From: Polymyxa betae A26-41
Lineage: Eukaryota; Protista; Endomyxa: Phytomyxea
Reading direction: 5' to 3'
DNA: 64,000 nt
Assembly: GCA_003693705.1 (NCBI GenBank)
Contig: RBZT01000261.1
Span: 29,667-93,666, forward strand
Shown here: one piece after another, positions 37,220-49,396 of the stretch
Layout: every line of letters starts with the position of its first letter
Numbering within the stretch: position 1 is the first letter of the stretch
Program-made: the position numbers and the translations under genes
The notes under the pieces: model-generated
What the model saw: the letters and a program-made list of their open reading frames with translations, nothing else
Database searches by the model: none
Told to the model about the DNA's origin: nothing

Positions 37220-39236
37220 ATGTTGCTCTTCAGTCACATCTCTTTGCTTACATGTGTATTAATTGCTTGTGTCCATGCTGGTATTAATGATGGAAGATGT
37301 GGACCTAATTTTGAAAGCTATGGCTGTCCCCGAGACTTCTGGTAAGTCATACTGAACTCATATATCGAACACTATCGCTGATCGACCTCTCACAGCTGCT
37401 CCAAATTTCAGTATTGTGGCAATACACCAAACCATTGCAATGATCGTCTAAGTCCATTCACACGATCAGATGGACGATGTGGTCCTCATTATGATAAGGC
37501 ACCCTGCCCTATTGGTAGCTGTTGCTCCAAATCAGGTAATATCATATCACTCATTCATTCATTCTTCATCTTACGATTACTGGCAGGACAATGTGGAACT
37601 GGGATTCTGTTCTGTAATTCACCCAATAATGGTACTAATGGCCCTTCCTCTTCATTCCAGCGTCTATTATCATCAGTAACTTCAACATCCATAACTCCAC
37701 AGACATCTACCCCATATATCCGGTCAGATTCAAGATGTGGTGCTCCATTCGGTAATGCAGTCTGTCGTACTGGCCATTGCTGCTCTACATTCAGTAAGGG
37801 GAATCATCAATCGAATGGAATCTGTCATGAGTTTATTACTGATAGATTATTGTGGATCCGGTCCTGATTACTGTTCAACTGCAGCACCTGTCCCTGCATC
37901 TTCACCAGTACCATCATCAGCATCGTCATTATCATCACCAGCACCATCACCATCACAGTTACCATCATCAGCATCGTCATTATCATCACCAGCACCATCA
38001 CCATCACAGTTATCATCGTTAGCACCATCACCTTCAGCTCCCACTGCGATTCGATGTGGAGCACCATATGGTGATGCTGTATGTCCTCAAGGTCAATGCT
38101 GCTCGAAATGGAGTATGGAATATATCGACGCTGCCCTAATATATCATTTATATGTTTATGATAGATTATTGTGGATCTGGGCCTGATTATTGCCCTGCAC
38201 CAACACCCGCACCATCATCACCTCCGCAAACACAACCTCCGACAATTCGTTCTGATAATCGATGTGGTGCATTATTTGGTAATGCAGGATGTCCTCAAGG
38301 TCAATGTTGTTCACAATATAGTATGGGATTATATGAATATCATCCTAATATACTTTAATCATTAATTCTTTATAGATTACTGTGGTTCTGGACCTGATTA
38401 CTGCTTTACAAGCTCATTAACTACGCTTCTACCGAAATCACTCTATGATTCATTGGTGACTAAAGACCCGTCATGTGAAGGCCCACCGAAATACACCTAT
38501 GAAAATTTCCTTCGAGCTGCGAGTGCTTTTCCGACATTCGCTAACCAAGGATCTCTTGAAGCTCAAAAACGTGATATAGTCGGATTTCTGTCTCACGTGT
38601 TGCATGAATCGGGTGATCTCTGTTATATCAATGAAATAGCACACAGCGTAAGTATCATCCTCCAGAAAGCACAGTATGTCCACACTCTGATATTCAGCTA
38701 CTAGACACCAGCAACATATTGTGCTCCATCAGATCGATATCCATGTTATCCAGGAGCTAATTATCATGGTCGTGGACCATTCCAGCTAACATGGGTATCA
38801 ATAGATTTTCTTTTGGAGATGTTTCCTGCTCATAATGCTGACATATTCTTGTTTATCATAGAATTTCAATTACATCAAATTCGGTCAGACATTAACGCCA
38901 GATTTAGCTCTAGCTATATATCAAACACCAGATGCATTATCTAATGATGGCGAGTTACTATTTCGTACTGCCTTTTGGTATTATATGTTAGCACAACCAA
39001 CTGGCAGCATGCATGACAATATGATCGCAAATCCGCCCAATTTCGCTCAGACTATCAGAAACATCAATGGTTGGCATTGGTTTGTTCAGTTCCATCGCTC
39101 GATTGTGAATCTTGGTACAGGTCCAGTGGAATGCAACGGAGGCAATCCTGCTCAGGTCAACAGTCGTGTCAAGAGATACCAGGCGTTATGTAACCTGTTT
39201 GGAATCGATCCAGGAACAACTTCGCTTTATTGCTGA
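37220..39236 (+). CDS. Secreted GH19 chitinase with five N-terminal CBM18 (hevein-type) modules; paralog 1
   Basis: Signal peptide, then RCG...CP...CCS...YCG...C modules and S/P linkers. GH19 motifs: [61 protein letters not shown]. Confidence 0.92.
37910..38011 (+). repeat. 51-bp coding tandem duplication ([17 protein letters not shown] x2)
   Basis: Direct repeat visible in the chitinase linker. Confidence 0.9.
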
Positions 39237-41624
39237 AGGATCGCTATTGATGAGTTATCGTACATGCAGAAATGTTGAGGTCTTGGAATATTGCTATAAA
39301 CAGACAATTCCAATTGTTACTGGATGGCGTTACGTTCAATCAATGGTTGTACTTACAGATATTGATATATGGTCAGTTTCATGCTAATGACATCAATGTG
39401 ATATGTGACAATCTCACCCAAGACTTGAGTTCGTTCTTCATTATAATCGTCGCAATCGGGACTGTTTTTGCTGTGATTACCATTCTACCTTGATTAGATT
39501 TGTCGCTCGGTTTGCATTTTCAGTTGATCATCTGTTAGATCTTTTTTTGTTTATCCGCAGATAGATCATGGTCTATAACTGCAATTTGGCGTGATAATCG
39601 TTTCGTGACCAATAAAGCTAGAACCATCTGTTCTAATCGAAATTATACATAATCTTGGTATGTTGTTCAACAAAGATATCTCTAAGAATCTCTACATCTG
39701 TATTAATCCATAGGGAGTTTGATTATGTTTATGTCACATTGATAGTCTGGGAAATATTTGTGGTTGGTTTGTCTCGTATCAATCGATCTTGGAATACTAG
39801 CAGCAATATGAGAATGGTAATATATCTGCCTTTAAGAATATGTGTGACATTGCTTCCTGCACCAAGTACCGCCTTGTTCGCATTCTTCAGGGGGCGACTT
39901 CCGGTAGATCATGTTTATGGATGTCATTACAAGAACAATGATGTGTCGTTGTTGAAAGATCGCTATCAGACACAGTAAGTTCGCTAAATGAACAGTTAAT
40001 GCTCGCCTCTATCAGTTTCCGCAACACGCCGCTTCCATCAAAATAGAAGGCAACGGCTTCTGACAATCCGTTCGAATTTGACGAATATTAGCTCCATGAT
40101 AAATGTCGTCCTTGACATACTGGCCAGCTGGCCTTCATAGGTGTTAACAGGTAGTAGATCTGAGACAGCTGGGCTTCAACAAAACAGGCTGCAAGAAGAC
40201 ACAGCACCATATCATCAGAATTAGGTGCACGAGGCTCAGAGAAAAAAACGATGCAAAGAAAGGTTCGAGGCATAAATTCAGCTCAGGACGTAAAGCTATG
40301 GGCTGGTATAAAAATCATGATCAAATGATAGAGGTATCCAAATAGAGAGTTTCTGATCATAGATAGTACAAATCAGCCGCCAATCGATATTTAATCCATT
40401 CCCCGAATTCGCCCCTGTCGATCTCTGTATTGTTGGAAGCTATTGATAGTGATTTCATTGGCTGCGAAGTCGTCTGCTCGCTTCGACCCGTCGGACTACA
40501 GACAATTTGCTGCTCGTGGAATAAGTGGTGACCAATTTTATGGGCGGCGGTAAACACGACAGCTTCATTTGGATCTCGCTTTGCAATGGGTTTCAATACT
40601 CAGATTACATCAGCAGGAATCATGATATCATCAGATCATTGTCTGTCGCTCATTGCATAAGGGTCACTATTGCTAACATGTTGACCGCCGATTATACGAA
40701 TCAGCGACAGACAATCTTGAAGAATTGCTCGAGCTCAGTCGATATTCTCCTTAATTGGTTCATTTGCAAATGCAGCAGGATTATGATAGCACTCAATTTG
40801 TCTACAATACCTGACATAAACTGTTACAGGTATAACGTTGTACCTGTGAAATGAAGGTATCTTTCTTTAGAACGAAACAGAAGGCCCGAGCTTTCCAAAA
40901 GTGTTTTATTACTAATGCATACAAATTCTTCAAACAGCTAAAGTGCCTTATCCAAAGTCGCAATTTAGCCTTTGCAGGGTTTTCAATGTACAGAAATTGG
41001 GCTAATCGATTAATGCAACGAAGAAAGCTATCAGAATACAGGTACACAGTTTATCAAGTACAAACGTTGATACCTACATAAATACTTCAATGATTGGGTA
41101 AAGCAATAAGTATGGAATTGAGTGCACAGAACGTCTAGCGATACATTCAAGTCTATGGATCGCTATTTTAGCAATGAAATCTGCAAGATTTGCTCCTATC
41201 AAACGACGCCCGATTGGCCAGCTGAACCTGGTTAAGTGAGATTCAATATCCAGCGATATATCATTGGTTACAGACTTCATTTGGCGTTTTCTCTCACCCG
41301 TTGAGTGAAGAAAGTTCAAACTCTGAATTGACAACTATGCTTTTGGACATTAATACGAGAGATATGTCTGTGCAAACTAAGAGAATATGTCGCTTATAAT
41401 CGGCTACAGTGTAACCATGTTAATATTCAGAATTCGTTTTCAACTGGTACTAGAGAGATCTTTATTCGGCAGAATATCTTGTCAAGCTGCAGTCGAATGG
41501 AAATGCATGTCTAGAAACCGTAAAATCAATGAAATATCTGATGGTTGGCTCGGCTCCGAAATTTAATATCTTTGGCTTGTTTATGACGATCTCATACAGC
41601 ATTAACTTTTTAAAGAATTTCAAT

Positions 41625-43252
41625 ATGATGTATCATATGCAGACAATCCCAATTATCTTCTGCATATTGGCCATCGAGATCAACGCAAACAAGAACGATG
41701 GCCGATGTGGACCTAATTTCGGCAGCAATGGATGTCCAAAGAACTTTTGGTGAGAACATTATCTCAACATCATCATCAAATTGTTAAAAATTGTTTCAGC
41801 TGCTCGAGTTTTGCTTATTGTGGTAATACACCAAATCATTGCCGGGATCACACGACACCATTTATCCGATCTGATGGATACTGTGGGAAACATTATGATG
41901 ATGGAATTTGTCCAATCGGCAGTTGTTGCTCTAAGAAAGGTACTAGTAGATGTATCAGTATTGAGCCATTCCTAAACCAATCCCGTAACAGGAATCTGTG
42001 AGACATGTGTGTCTGTATCATCTATCAGTACCAGTAATAGATTGACACTCTCGCCTGCATATTCATTCCAGCGTCTCATAACCACGTTATCAACGACACC
42101 AGCTTCATTGCCGACACCAGCACCGACACCAGCTTCAACGCCATCTCCAACTCCGGCTCCTACGCCAACGCCTGCTCCGACTCCATCTCCAACACCATCT
42201 CCATCTCCAGCATTACAGTCAAGCCCAGCTCCAACATCATATATCCGTTCGGATGGACGTTGTGGTTCTATATTCGGTAATGCAGTGTGTGTTCCAGGTG
42301 AATGCTGCTCAGAATGGAGTATGTTGATTAAACGATATTAAGACATATATCATTACTAATATCTGCTTATAGATTATTGTGGATCGGGAGATGGATTTTG
42401 CACAACCTCATCTTCAGCATTATCCACATTGCTCACTAAAGCCATGTTCAACTCGTTGTTGAGCATCGATCCCAGCTGTGAAGGTCCACCTAAATACACA
42501 TACGATAATTTGTTGCAGGCGGCAGCTGCCTATCCAACATTCGCTAATCAAGGCTCGTTGGACAATAGAAAGCGTGATATAGCCGGATTTCTGGCTCATG
42601 TATTACATGAATCTGGCTCCTTATGCTATATCAATGAACTCGCACCGAGTGTAAGCTATATCCCAATTGAGGGCCAGTATGTCCACCCTCTGATATTCAG
42701 CTACTAGACACCGGCGACATATTGTGCTCCATCAGATCAATACCCGTGTTATCCAGGAGCAGATTATCATGGTCGCGGACCATTCCAGCTAACATGGGTA
42801 TCAAATTACTGATTTTATCAACTTGTTTTTCGAATATTTTGCCTGATGTGGATATTGATGTCGTGATGGTGTAGAATTACAATTATATCGAGTTTGGTAA
42901 GATATTAACACCAGAACAAGCCATAGCTATCTATCGCACACCAGATACATTGGGCAATGATGGTCAACTTCTATTTCGTGCTGCATTCTGGTTCTACATG
43001 ACATCTAAAGCTAAGGGAAATATGCATGATTTAATGATTGCAGCTTCCCCAAATTTCGGTGCAACCATTAATATCATCAATGGTATTAAATCTAGGAATG
43101 ATTGTCTAGTTCGAGTTTGTTACAACGGGTTTCATTCAGGTGGATTAGAATGCAATGGCAAGAATCCGGCCCAGGTTAATAGCCGTGTTCAACGATATTT
43201 GAAGTTATGTAATATGCTGGGTGTCAGTACTGGTGACTTACTTTACTGTTGA
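41625..43252 (+). CDS. Secreted GH19 chitinase with three CBM18 modules; paralog 2
   Basis: Same exon structure and motifs as paralog 1 ([47 protein letters not shown]), with a PT/PS linker. Confidence 0.92.
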
Positions 43253-43620
43253 GGCAAGATCAGCAAAGTGCTGTTGAACGCAATTCCTTTCTCTTCGACA
43301 ATTTTGTTATTCTGTTATAAACAGATTAGATTTGTTAGCAAGTCAGCTGTAGTTCAACAATACCTAGTTCGACTGTAGTGGACTGCATGAAAAAACTGCC
43401 CAGATTTCTTCGCACTTGATACAGTACAATCGAAAATTTGAATTTTCAACTTGAGGGTGTTGGTCCCCTGTTACGCAATTTTGTAATAATGTGAAACACA
43501 ATTAGTCCGCACTGTGCCTACTGGTACCTATTTATTGCTTATTATTATAAATATAATACGTACTCGTAGTTCTTAAGTTGCAAACAAGCAAGGGACATCT
43601 GCCAAATACATTAATATCAA

Positions 43621-44967
43621 ATGGATGATGGTCATATCGAGATCGTATCAATTCGTGATGCAGATCACGATTTGCAATTACGTCTGATTGATGGCGCCGC
43701 CAACTTCCTCAGCCGTGTCTGGCCACAGATTTCTTATCAAGTTCGTTCACTGCAAATCAAGCAGGTGGTCGCCTCCAGCGCCGGATTCGTCTTGATATCA
43801 CATCACTGTCATAATGTTATTGGGGTCGCCAAACTCCAACCTCTACATCGCTCATTTCGTGATCCTGTCGCGTATCTCACCTGTTTTCTAATTCACGACG
43901 ATTACAAAGGGCAAGGGTTAGGACGTCGAATGTATTCTGAGGTCGAACAACATGCTCTGGCACTGAATTATGTTCGAATATTTCTCGAAGCTGACCAAGC
44001 CTTACAATTTTGGTCACGACTCGGTTTTTCATCATGTCCGAAACCTCGAGAATTAATTAAATCATCACGATTAAGTGCAGTCTCACAGCAGACCCTGGAA
44101 AGGCTATTCGGACAGAAAGCGTCGGAACTACTACTGACCCCACGAGGTTGGATGACGAAAGCCATTGTCGAAGATCGCGGATTTGTTAACAACGACAGCG
44201 ATTGGTGGCAGGCTGAAATCGAACGGTTAACACCTCGTGGTCCTTCGACAAAAGTTGGGATTGCGTTCAAGATGGCTTCCACCCAGCAGGTTGGACCAAG
44301 TTGTGGTCTGGCAGCTCTCAGAATGGCAGCTCAGCCAATGCAACAACCCATCTGCTTCAAAATTGATAATGATGTGTACCGGGCCATCCCAAGTGACGAT
44401 GTTGTCAAAGTGCTAAATAGATACATGGACAATGACAATCTAGATGATTTCCTGATTGAATTGCCAGAGAGCAAGATAGGTCATAATCATCAATCAACTT
44501 CATTGTTATCAACAGCCATATATATGGGTTATACATATCGAGGTGAGATGTTCAATGCAATTCATTTAGCACATCTAGGACGGGTATACTACCCCCAACA
44601 TACCATTACCTGCATTAAGAAGTCCCTCCAAATCTCCGATATTCTTGCATGTATCATCCAGGGCAAGCGCATCCTCATCGCCTACGATCGATCTGCAGCC
44701 AATCACGAACCCGCCTTCAACCGCGCCAATTCTGCCCATTGGCTAGTCGTCGTTGGCGCCATCATCACCGATCTCGGCACGGTTGACGTCGTGGGCCAGC
44801 ACGGCATGAGCCAGCGGCCGCTGATCGTGCCGGCCCAGAATCTGCTGCGATCGAACGCTCAACTGACGGGACCGCTAACCGATCCGACATCGTATAAGCT
44901 GGACCAGGATGGTATTCAACTATGCGATTATATGGTGACTATATACGAGAATTACAATGTTGATTAA
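43621..44967 (+). CDS. Fusion of an NAA80-like GNAT acetyltransferase and an ACTMAP (C19orf54)-like actin maturation protease
   Basis: Single 448-aa ORF. GNAT half: [31 protein letters not shown]. Protease half: [57 protein letters not shown]. Confidence 0.85.
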
Positions 44968-45079
44968 GTGGACCGTATCAAATGTAAAGGTCCGGAGAGG
45001 GCCAAACCCACCACCAACCTTCATCGTCTCACACCATCCCCGTACTGGCCCGGTCCAGGAAAATACTTGTGAGTGTGTC

Positions 45080-46583
<1,504 letters not shown>

Positions 46584-48493: not shown

Positions 48494-49396
48494 TTACTGG
48501 AAATCAGATTCATTGGTACCAGCAGGTTCGAGGTCGTCTAGATCGTTCTGGACCTGATCCGCAACACCACTGACAGCGTCCTCCATCTGGTCTGTGACGC
48601 CTTTCACGGCGCTCTCCACTTGCTCGGATAAACCACCGACGACGTCCTCCATTTGGCTGCTTACAGAGTCGGTAACTTCCTGGACGCGAGCTGAGACTTC
48701 TTCTTGGACACTGGCGATCTGATCCTGTACGGCGTCCTTGGCGGCTTGAACTTGGTTCTCGACCGCATCCTGAACGGCACTTTGAATGCTTTCGAGCGGC
48801 TCTTTAACAACCTCTAGCAGACGTTCATGGGCAGATTCCACATACTCATCAACATCCAGATATGTTCTCGCTTTTTCACCGATGCTTGTCACAACCGATG
48901 ATAGAACCAGATTTGCTGCGAATGTGGCAGCGTGACCAATTCGACCTAGAATCGTTATGCTATCATCATCGACGTCCCCATCGTCGGTATCCATGCCCAT
49001 TTCCTTCCGGGTTTGGCTGGCTTTATCGGAAATCAAGTTACTGGCACGGTTGCTGATCGCACCAAACGAGAATCCATCGGCGAATAGATCGGTCTTGGTA
49101 TAGAGATAGACACCAGCCCCAACAGTAATTGCAGTAACCCCAATGCCTGCAATCCATAAGGTTGTTCGCGACATTGGCGGAACGGGCTTGCATTCCTCCC
49201 CGCCGTCTCCATCGGTTTCGATGTCTTCACACTGCTGGGCGATTAAGGGTTCAGATTCTGGCGTCAGATCGCCGGAAACTTGACCGGCTTCTTCGATGAT
49301 ATCGTTGAGGGTGGCGACTGTCTGCACTAATTGCTGGGTGGCATCAGTTAGCAACTGCTTGACTTCTTCGAGGGGAACGCCGGCTTCGGTTGTCAT
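48494..49396 (-). CDS. Intronless acidic protein with one TM segment and C-terminal 11-residue amphipathic repeats
   Basis: 300-aa ORF with TM LWIAGIGVTAITVGAGVYLY and repeats such as QMEDVVGGLSE/QVESAVKGVTD/QMEDAVSGVAD. Confidence 0.75.
   Translation of the reverse strand: MTTEAGVPLEEVKQLLTDATQQLVQTVATLNDIIEEAGQVSGDLTPESEPLIAQQCEDIETDGDGGEECKPVPPMSRTTLWIAGIGVTAITVGAGVYLYTKTDLFADGFSFGAISNRASNLISDKASQTRKEMGMDTDDGDVDDDSITILGRIGHAATFAANLVLSSVVTSIGEKARTYLDVDEYVESAHERLLEVVKEPLESIQSAVQDAVENQVQAAKDAVQDQIASVQEEVSARVQEVTDSVSSQMEDVVGGLSEQVESAVKGVTDQMEDAVSGVADQVQNDLDDLEPAGTNESDFQ

Follow-up and report, generated by a model that had tools for sequence, protein, structure and literature searches.

A NAA80-type acetyltransferase joined to an ACTMAP-type protease in Polymyxa betae, a candidate single-chain actin maturation enzyme with relatives in several eukaryotic lineages

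In animals, class II actins are matured by removal of the initiator methionine, acetylation of the exposed cysteine by NatA, removal of the acetyl-cysteine by the protease ACTMAP and, finally, acetylation by NAA80 (PMC11465159). The nucleophile of human ACTMAP is C132 (PMC12934940), while residues W36 and R43 of Drosophila Naa80 are essential for activity and bind actin at its second acidic residue (PMC5924903). An inactive mutant of human NAA80 carries alterations at R170, G173 and Y205 together with W105 (PMC5924898), and the V220-L231 segment of the human enzyme has been mutated (M1/M2) in tests of actin binding (PMC7141826). In reviews published in 2025 and 2026, actin maturation by ACTMAP and NAA80 is described as animal-specific (PMC11735805, PMC13557074), and NAA80 has been reported to occur in some Amoebozoa and to be absent from fungi and plants (Drazic 2018, PMC5924898).

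Here we describe a gene of Polymyxa betae A26-41, a root-infecting plasmodiophorid (Rhizaria), that was proposed, in a first-pass annotation of 64,000 nucleotides of contig RBZT01000261.1 (hereafter the window), to specify a NAA80-like acetyltransferase and an ACTMAP-like protease on one polypeptide. Neither such a fusion nor ACTMAP in protists was found to be described in the open literature that was searched; the ACTMAP discovery paper (Haahr 2022) and a 2023 commentary lie outside that set, and an earlier mention there is possible.

Gene structure and transcription

The gene is a single open frame of 448 codons devoid of internal stops (Table 1), and an in-frame TAA is located three codons 5' of its ATG. 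Transcription was assessed using contigs from three unlabelled sequencing runs aligned to the window. These contigs skip three GT..AG introns in neighbouring genes and leave the intergenic positions 43355-43536 uncovered, and are therefore RNA-derived; none of them displays a splice joint inside the fusion ORF. One raw-read RNA run, compared in the same way, contained no reads of this organism. One contig of run X3 is continuous over 43562-45215 with zero differences from the window, while a contig from a second study (run X5) covers 44125-44408, i.e., from the last GNAT strand, across the junction between the domains and past the Cys228 codon. The long X3 contig extends into the GMP reductase gene, which it shows in spliced form, and thus does not define one transcript; since neither a stop nor an intron separates the two domains, any mRNA from this region encodes both. 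The fusion gene is real and expressed. The open frame and the unspliced contigs confirm the intronless 448-residue ORF of the first-pass annotation, both contigs provide RNA coverage of the junction at approximately 44150-44280, and the positions which that annotation assigned to the KGQGLG motif (43906-43923) and to the Cys228 and His373 codons (44302 and 44737) are exact. That two adjacent genes, or a mis-assembly, have been read as one ORF is extremely improbable: the assembly is a short-read draft and the longest RNA contig also enters the next gene, such that contigs can join transcripts, but the frame is stop-free, the sequence is identical between independent runs, and approximately 140 unrelated clusters share the architecture together with a conserved junction motif.

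Table 1. Coordinates in the window of the fusion gene and its candidate functional elements.
Feature	Position	Strand	Basis
NAA80-ACTMAP fusion gene, intronless, 448 aa	43621..44967	+	ORF, Pfam, unspliced RNA-type contigs, single copy
5' untranslated leader, approximate	43561..43620	+	RNA-type contigs (two studies) start at 43561/43562, upstream uncovered; contig ends only approximate the start
NAA80-type GNAT N-terminal acetyltransferase domain, residues 1-182	43621..44166	+	Profiles, predicted fold
Putative substrate-recognition loop W34-P35 and R42 (equivalent to fly Naa80 W36, R43)	43720..43746	+	Alignment register; function from PMC5924903
Acetyl-CoA binding motif K96-G101 (KGQGLG)	43906..43923	+	G101 invariant in 144/144 other fusions
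Proline-poor insert, residues ~140-170; start aligns with human NAA80 actin-contact segment V220-L231	44038..44130	+	Alignments
Last GNAT strand W177-I182, leading into structured linker (strand, helix, strand)	44149..44265	+	Junction motif, model
ACTMAP-type papain-like cysteine protease domain, residues 216-448	44266..44964	+	PF21646, Atlas match
Q223 (presumed oxyanion residue) and C228 (presumed nucleophile)	44287..44304	+	100% conserved in 150 other fusions
H373, presumed catalytic histidine	44737..44739	+	98% conserved; role inferred

The fusion gene is flanked by a GH19 chitinase gene on one side and a GMP reductase gene on the other, both of which possess introns. RNA-type contigs from two studies bridge, without a gap, the 115 bases (44967-45082) between the fusion gene and the GMP reductase gene that follows it, which would reflect either overlapping UTRs or read-through; a model in which the two genes are spliced together was considered and is ruled out by the stop codon at 44965-44967 and the lack of a joint. 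An exact 16-base repeat is present at 45042-45057, just 5' of the GMP reductase start, and at 45220-45235, within the first intron of the same gene. Upstream, positions 37700-43252 hold a tandem pair of intron-containing genes whose GH19 chitinase products possess chitin-binding domains and Pro/Ser/Thr linkers; the nearer gene is transcribed and spliced according to the RNA-type contigs. A 300-residue ORF on the reverse strand (48494-49396) displays a hydrophobic stretch and apolipoprotein-like helical repeats, with all of its Pfam matches being sub-threshold.

Assignment of the two domains

The C-terminal half matches the Pfam family ACTMAP-like_C (PF21646) with an E value of 7.6e-23 and a score of 81.6 bits, against a curated cut-off of 27, and all 47 members of the fusion family that were scanned match the same profile. 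The Gln/Cys/His trio is intact in 146 of 151 fusions, and we infer the roles of Q223 and C228 by analogy with papain-like enzymes and with C132 of human ACTMAP, of which C228 is presumed to be the equivalent by motif rather than by direct alignment. In a structural search of the Atlas, in which both sides of each comparison are predictions, the best match was a chordate cluster labelled Actin maturation protease (TM 0.63, 223 aligned residues, rmsd 3.1), followed by a NAA80 cluster. The ACTMAP assignment is thus supported by the Pfam profile, the predicted fold and the three presumed catalytic residues, as the first-pass annotation had proposed.

The N-terminal half carries a GNAT domain (Acetyltransf_1, residues 50-136, E 2.6e-10). 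The Polymyxa sequence by itself matches human NAA80 weakly (E 0.012, second-ranked match). A profile of 13 GNAT halves from the fusion family, seeded without any animal sequence, retrieves human NAA80 at 3.3e-26 and fly Naa80 at 4e-26, with the next GNAT at 3.6e-13 (95 bits versus 53), while a profile of 98 sequences returns the human and fly enzymes at 4e-32 and 1e-29 (115 and 107 bits) versus 3e-13 (53 bits) for the next GNAT. Furthermore, NAA80 structures occupied ranks one to five in Foldseek searches with two models of the GNAT half, and four family members run singly each returned NAA80 as their top two PDB matches. VIA-align placed fly Naa80 first among 48,161 chains for the model of residues 3-182 (Z 17.8, rmsd 2.6, 156 aligned), by a small margin over other GNATs (Z 16.5 for the next), and the top three matches of the Atlas search were arthropod clusters, one of them labelled NAA80. 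Profiles, predicted fold and substrate-pocket residues therefore support the earlier assignment of this half as NAA80-type, and by sequence and predicted fold the protein is a member of both families.

Residues W34 and R42 match the essential W36 and R43 of fly Naa80 in a register that is shared with the nearest relatives and includes a one-residue insertion; in a pairwise alignment lacking this insertion Q40, and not R42, lies opposite R43. The secondary pocket residues of the fly enzyme, N33, S46, K73, S88, S124 and T125, correspond to S31, Q45, K71, C88, E123 and A124, of which only K71 is identical. Human R170, G173 and Y205 correspond to K96, G99 and W131, i.e., one identical and two conservative positions.

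These differences bear on whether the acetyltransferase of the Polymyxa copy is still effective. W131 is found where 99% of the fusion relatives have Tyr, and V69, K96, E123 and A124 likewise depart from the family (His in 83%, Arg in 93%, Trp in 81% and Thr in 86%, respectively), while the Polymyxa copy forms the longest branch of the FastTree tree; caution is therefore warranted, in that the site has drifted and the activity may be altered. It is nonetheless unlikely that, within a family of bifunctional actin maturases, the Polymyxa member has a weak or dead acetyltransferase half, such that the protease alone works and leaves unacetylated Asp-actin. Against this explanation, the protein retains W34, P35, R42, K71, G99, G101, E109, F130 and its last GNAT strand, the GNAT domain is modelled with a pLDDT above 90, and the frame is intact. 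Phe-Trp is, moreover, common at the position equivalent to 131 among active bacterial GNATs.

The insert before the last GNAT strand comprises 37 residues with three isolated prolines, in agreement with the proline-poor loop noted initially, and its residues L151, L159 and E160 are kept in 81-90% of the fusion family. A polyproline profilin-binding loop was found neither in the Polymyxa copy nor in 150 of the 151 fusions, as judged from a scan of the insert region. Human and zebrafish NAA80 possess such a loop whereas fly Naa80 has none (PMC7141826), so that its lack does not set the fusions apart and the loop is not a defining feature of NAA80.

Candidate actin substrate and proposed mechanism

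The two conventional actins of the Polymyxa genome (L002 and L003) both start with M-C-D-D-E, the class II actin start, in line with the proposal that actin is the substrate. The genome also contains a NatA auxiliary subunit and a profilin match, and an exon-by-exon search of the draft assembly returned no second NAA80-like or ACTMAP-like locus. Taken together, the actin start, the pathway partners and the single locus make it likely that the last two steps of the class II route are performed on one chain. The gene thus probably encodes a bifunctional actin N-terminal maturation enzyme, i.e., NAA80 and ACTMAP on a single polypeptide. The residue removed, which the first-pass annotation had taken to be acetyl-Met, would here instead be acetyl-Cys, both actins being M-C-D-D-E.

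In the proposed mechanism, methionine aminopeptidase would take off the methionine of the Met-Cys-Asp-Asp-Glu actin, upon which NatA would acetylate the exposed cysteine, as in the class II route of animals. The C-terminal domain would then cleave off acetyl-Cys through C228 and H373, and the N-terminal domain would move an acetyl group from acetyl-CoA onto the new Asp amine, with W34 and R42 reading the second acidic residue, to yield Ac-Asp-Asp-Glu actin. Monomeric actin is probably gripped by the helix that follows the GNAT core, in the same manner as by fly Naa80, which likewise has no polyproline profilin site. Both activities, the substrate and any hand-over between the two sites are proposals of this scheme. 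The whole-protein model, built from 98 sequences, reaches a pLDDT of 86 and a pTM of 0.84, values which suggest that the two domains are packed in a fixed arrangement, and its last GNAT strand runs into a structured linker; substrate channelling between the two sites is a hypothesis compatible with this model.

Actin may not be the sole client. NAA80 is intrinsically able to acetylate other acidic N-termini (PMC5924903), and approximately one third of the fusions, including those of the named diatoms (see below), have Tyr at the position equivalent to Arg43 and Tyr or Phe at that equivalent to Ser88, substitutions that hint at an altered specificity for N-termini within this group. On this basis the enzyme could trim and re-acetylate a wider or different set of N-termini, i.e., those of acidic-start proteins, with actin as one client or none. 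This appears improbable for the Polymyxa protein, in that actin was the sole substrate found in human cells and zebrafish (PMC11465159), the Polymyxa actins carry the exact class II start, and the actin-contact segment is alignable.

Distribution, origin and comparison with described systems

A search of 1.84 billion representatives at 50% identity returned both domains, in the same order, in 142 of the best 150 matches, two-domain status being called by our own cut-offs and the other eight having the appearance of fragments. Carriers with a name include the diatoms Cylindrotheca (CAJ1929955.1) and Mayamaea (GKZ01284.1), a Bacillariaceae MAG and Pelagophyceae CCMP2097 (KAJ1451017.1); complete MMETSP transcripts also encode it, and one transcript is assigned to the diplonemid Flectonema neradi, where contamination is possible. 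The hydrozoan Hydractinia symbiolongicarpus carries the fusion (XP_057293642.1) on chromosome CM055247.1, between the GrpE and PAXX genes, with one 216-base intron inside the GNAT half. This gene is annotated as uncharacterized LOC130622221 (L016:6001-7728) in a tractable animal model. A close relative is an intronless fusion (L023:6001-7470) whose long-read contig spans 1.7 Mb and displays GT-repeat introns; a neighbouring SRCAP/p400-like gene is much nearer to human than to yeast, and we therefore infer that the host is another animal, perhaps a sponge. This taxonomic range is a lower bound, as most members bear no taxon label. Word-index homolog searches with the GNAT alignment and with a 47-sequence alignment contributed hardly any further members; neither a stand-alone NAA80 or ACTMAP from an animal nor a second plasmodiophorid was among the matches, a blank that reflects the index and the length window rather than absence. 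Some members have additional parts, i.e., a PDZ-type insert in the protease half (P0009) or extensions of 250-500 residues (the P0009/P0071/P0090/P0159 group).

The description of the fusion as an oddity of one non-animal lineage consequently proved too narrow, given its presence in Hydractinia and in a large family. Its corollary, that the pathway may be wider than animals, fits the fused carriers among protists and algae, although it is not the first such hint, NAA80 having already been reported in Amoebozoa.

The two halves co-descend, as judged from unrooted FastTree trees of fusion proteins, in which the deep nodes are tentative. Twelve of the 15 well-supported splits of the GNAT-half tree recur in the protease-half tree, and identities of one half correlate with those of the other (Mantel r 0.71, 0/500 permutations), the correlation being weak among distant pairs (rho 0.16). 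The junction motif, of the W-[LM]-[RK]-K-R-L type, is kept in 123 of 151 fusions. Four animal-associated fusions cluster in both trees, with support of 0.98 for the protease half and 0.47 for the GNAT half, and the fusion on the 1.7-Mb contig scores 72-74 bits against human and fly NAA80, compared to 50-56 for Hydractinia and 37-49 for two other fusions. This pattern is compatible with a fused gene that was inherited vertically and underwent fission later on; horizontal transfer and repeated fusion are possible alternatives. We tentatively entertain, as a plausible reading on which we place somewhat less than even weight, that the fusion is ancestral, arose near the eukaryote root and was split later into the human and fly genes, with fixed active sites handing the actin N-terminus from protease to acetyltransferase, and that the fused state has been kept in Rhizaria, stramenopiles, a diplonemid and early-branching animals.

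A different ancestry is conceivable in the light of bacterial proteins that combine a GNAT domain with DUF3335, a C39-like domain, in the same order (PMC10318531). Clusters of these proteins are look-alikes of the whole protein in a language-model comparison (0.93), and descent from them, with the same job (peptide modification) and a secondary likeness to NAA80 and ACTMAP, could be envisaged. We consider this very unlikely: DUF3335 (PF11814) matches none of the 47 members, all of which match ACTMAP-like_C, and nothing in the Polymyxa genome, no bacterial or archaeal, viral or plasmid-borne relative turned up when prokaryote genomes, viral contigs and plasmids were scanned, and the shared features number 145-157 of 256, fewer than members of one family typically have in common. 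A remote shared origin of the GNAT plus papain-like architecture is possible.

If the fusion is truly conserved across several eukaryotic supergroups, the actin maturation pathway would date to near the origin of eukaryotes, and Ac-Asp or Ac-Glu actin would be predicted in diatoms and Rhizaria. These data suggest that a pathway held to be animal-specific arose much earlier, possibly in the form of one enzyme, and they raise fission inside animals as a testable event. Furthermore, the fusion lends independent support to a functional coupling of ACTMAP and NAA80, while the single chain would be useful for obtaining a first ACTMAP-type structure, for testing substrate hand-over and as a one-gene tool for maturing recombinant actin.

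Among described systems, human NAT6 and Drosophila CG8481 (NAA80/NatH; PDB 6NAS and 5WJE) share with the GNAT half the fold, the Trp-Pro and Arg of the alpha1-alpha2 loop, the acetyl-CoA motif, the insert before the last strand and an alignable actin-contact segment. The Polymyxa protein differs in being joined to a protease, in lacking an N-terminal extension and, as in the fly, a polyproline profilin site, and in bearing Trp at the Tyr205 equivalent and other pocket changes, with about 20% identity to NAA80. With ACTMAP (C19orf54; PF21646) it shares, in the same order, the motifs Gln-x-Gly-Pro-x-Cys-Gly, Gly-Glu, Tyr-Asp, Ala-His-Trp and Ser-Asn-x-Gln-Leu; unlike ACTMAP, it has as its N-terminal part the enzyme that acts next in the pathway, occurs in Rhizaria and contains a lineage-specific insert of 60 residues after the Cys helix. 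The bacterial GNAT-DUF3335 fusions have the same layout of an N-terminal GNAT and a C-terminal papain-like domain, but their protease half belongs to a different Pfam family and they are not known to carry an NAA80 signature. Close counterparts are the Cylindrotheca, Mayamaea, pelagophyte and Hydractinia proteins, which possess the same domains, order, junction motif and catalytic residues at 20-31% identity to the Polymyxa copy, the most divergent of the set, and which carry automatic labels only (hypothetical, uncharacterized or 'Actin maturation protease'). The pairing of GNAT and ACTMAP-like_C is visible in automatic database annotation; the principal interest lies in how widely the fused form occurs and in its possibly ancestral status.
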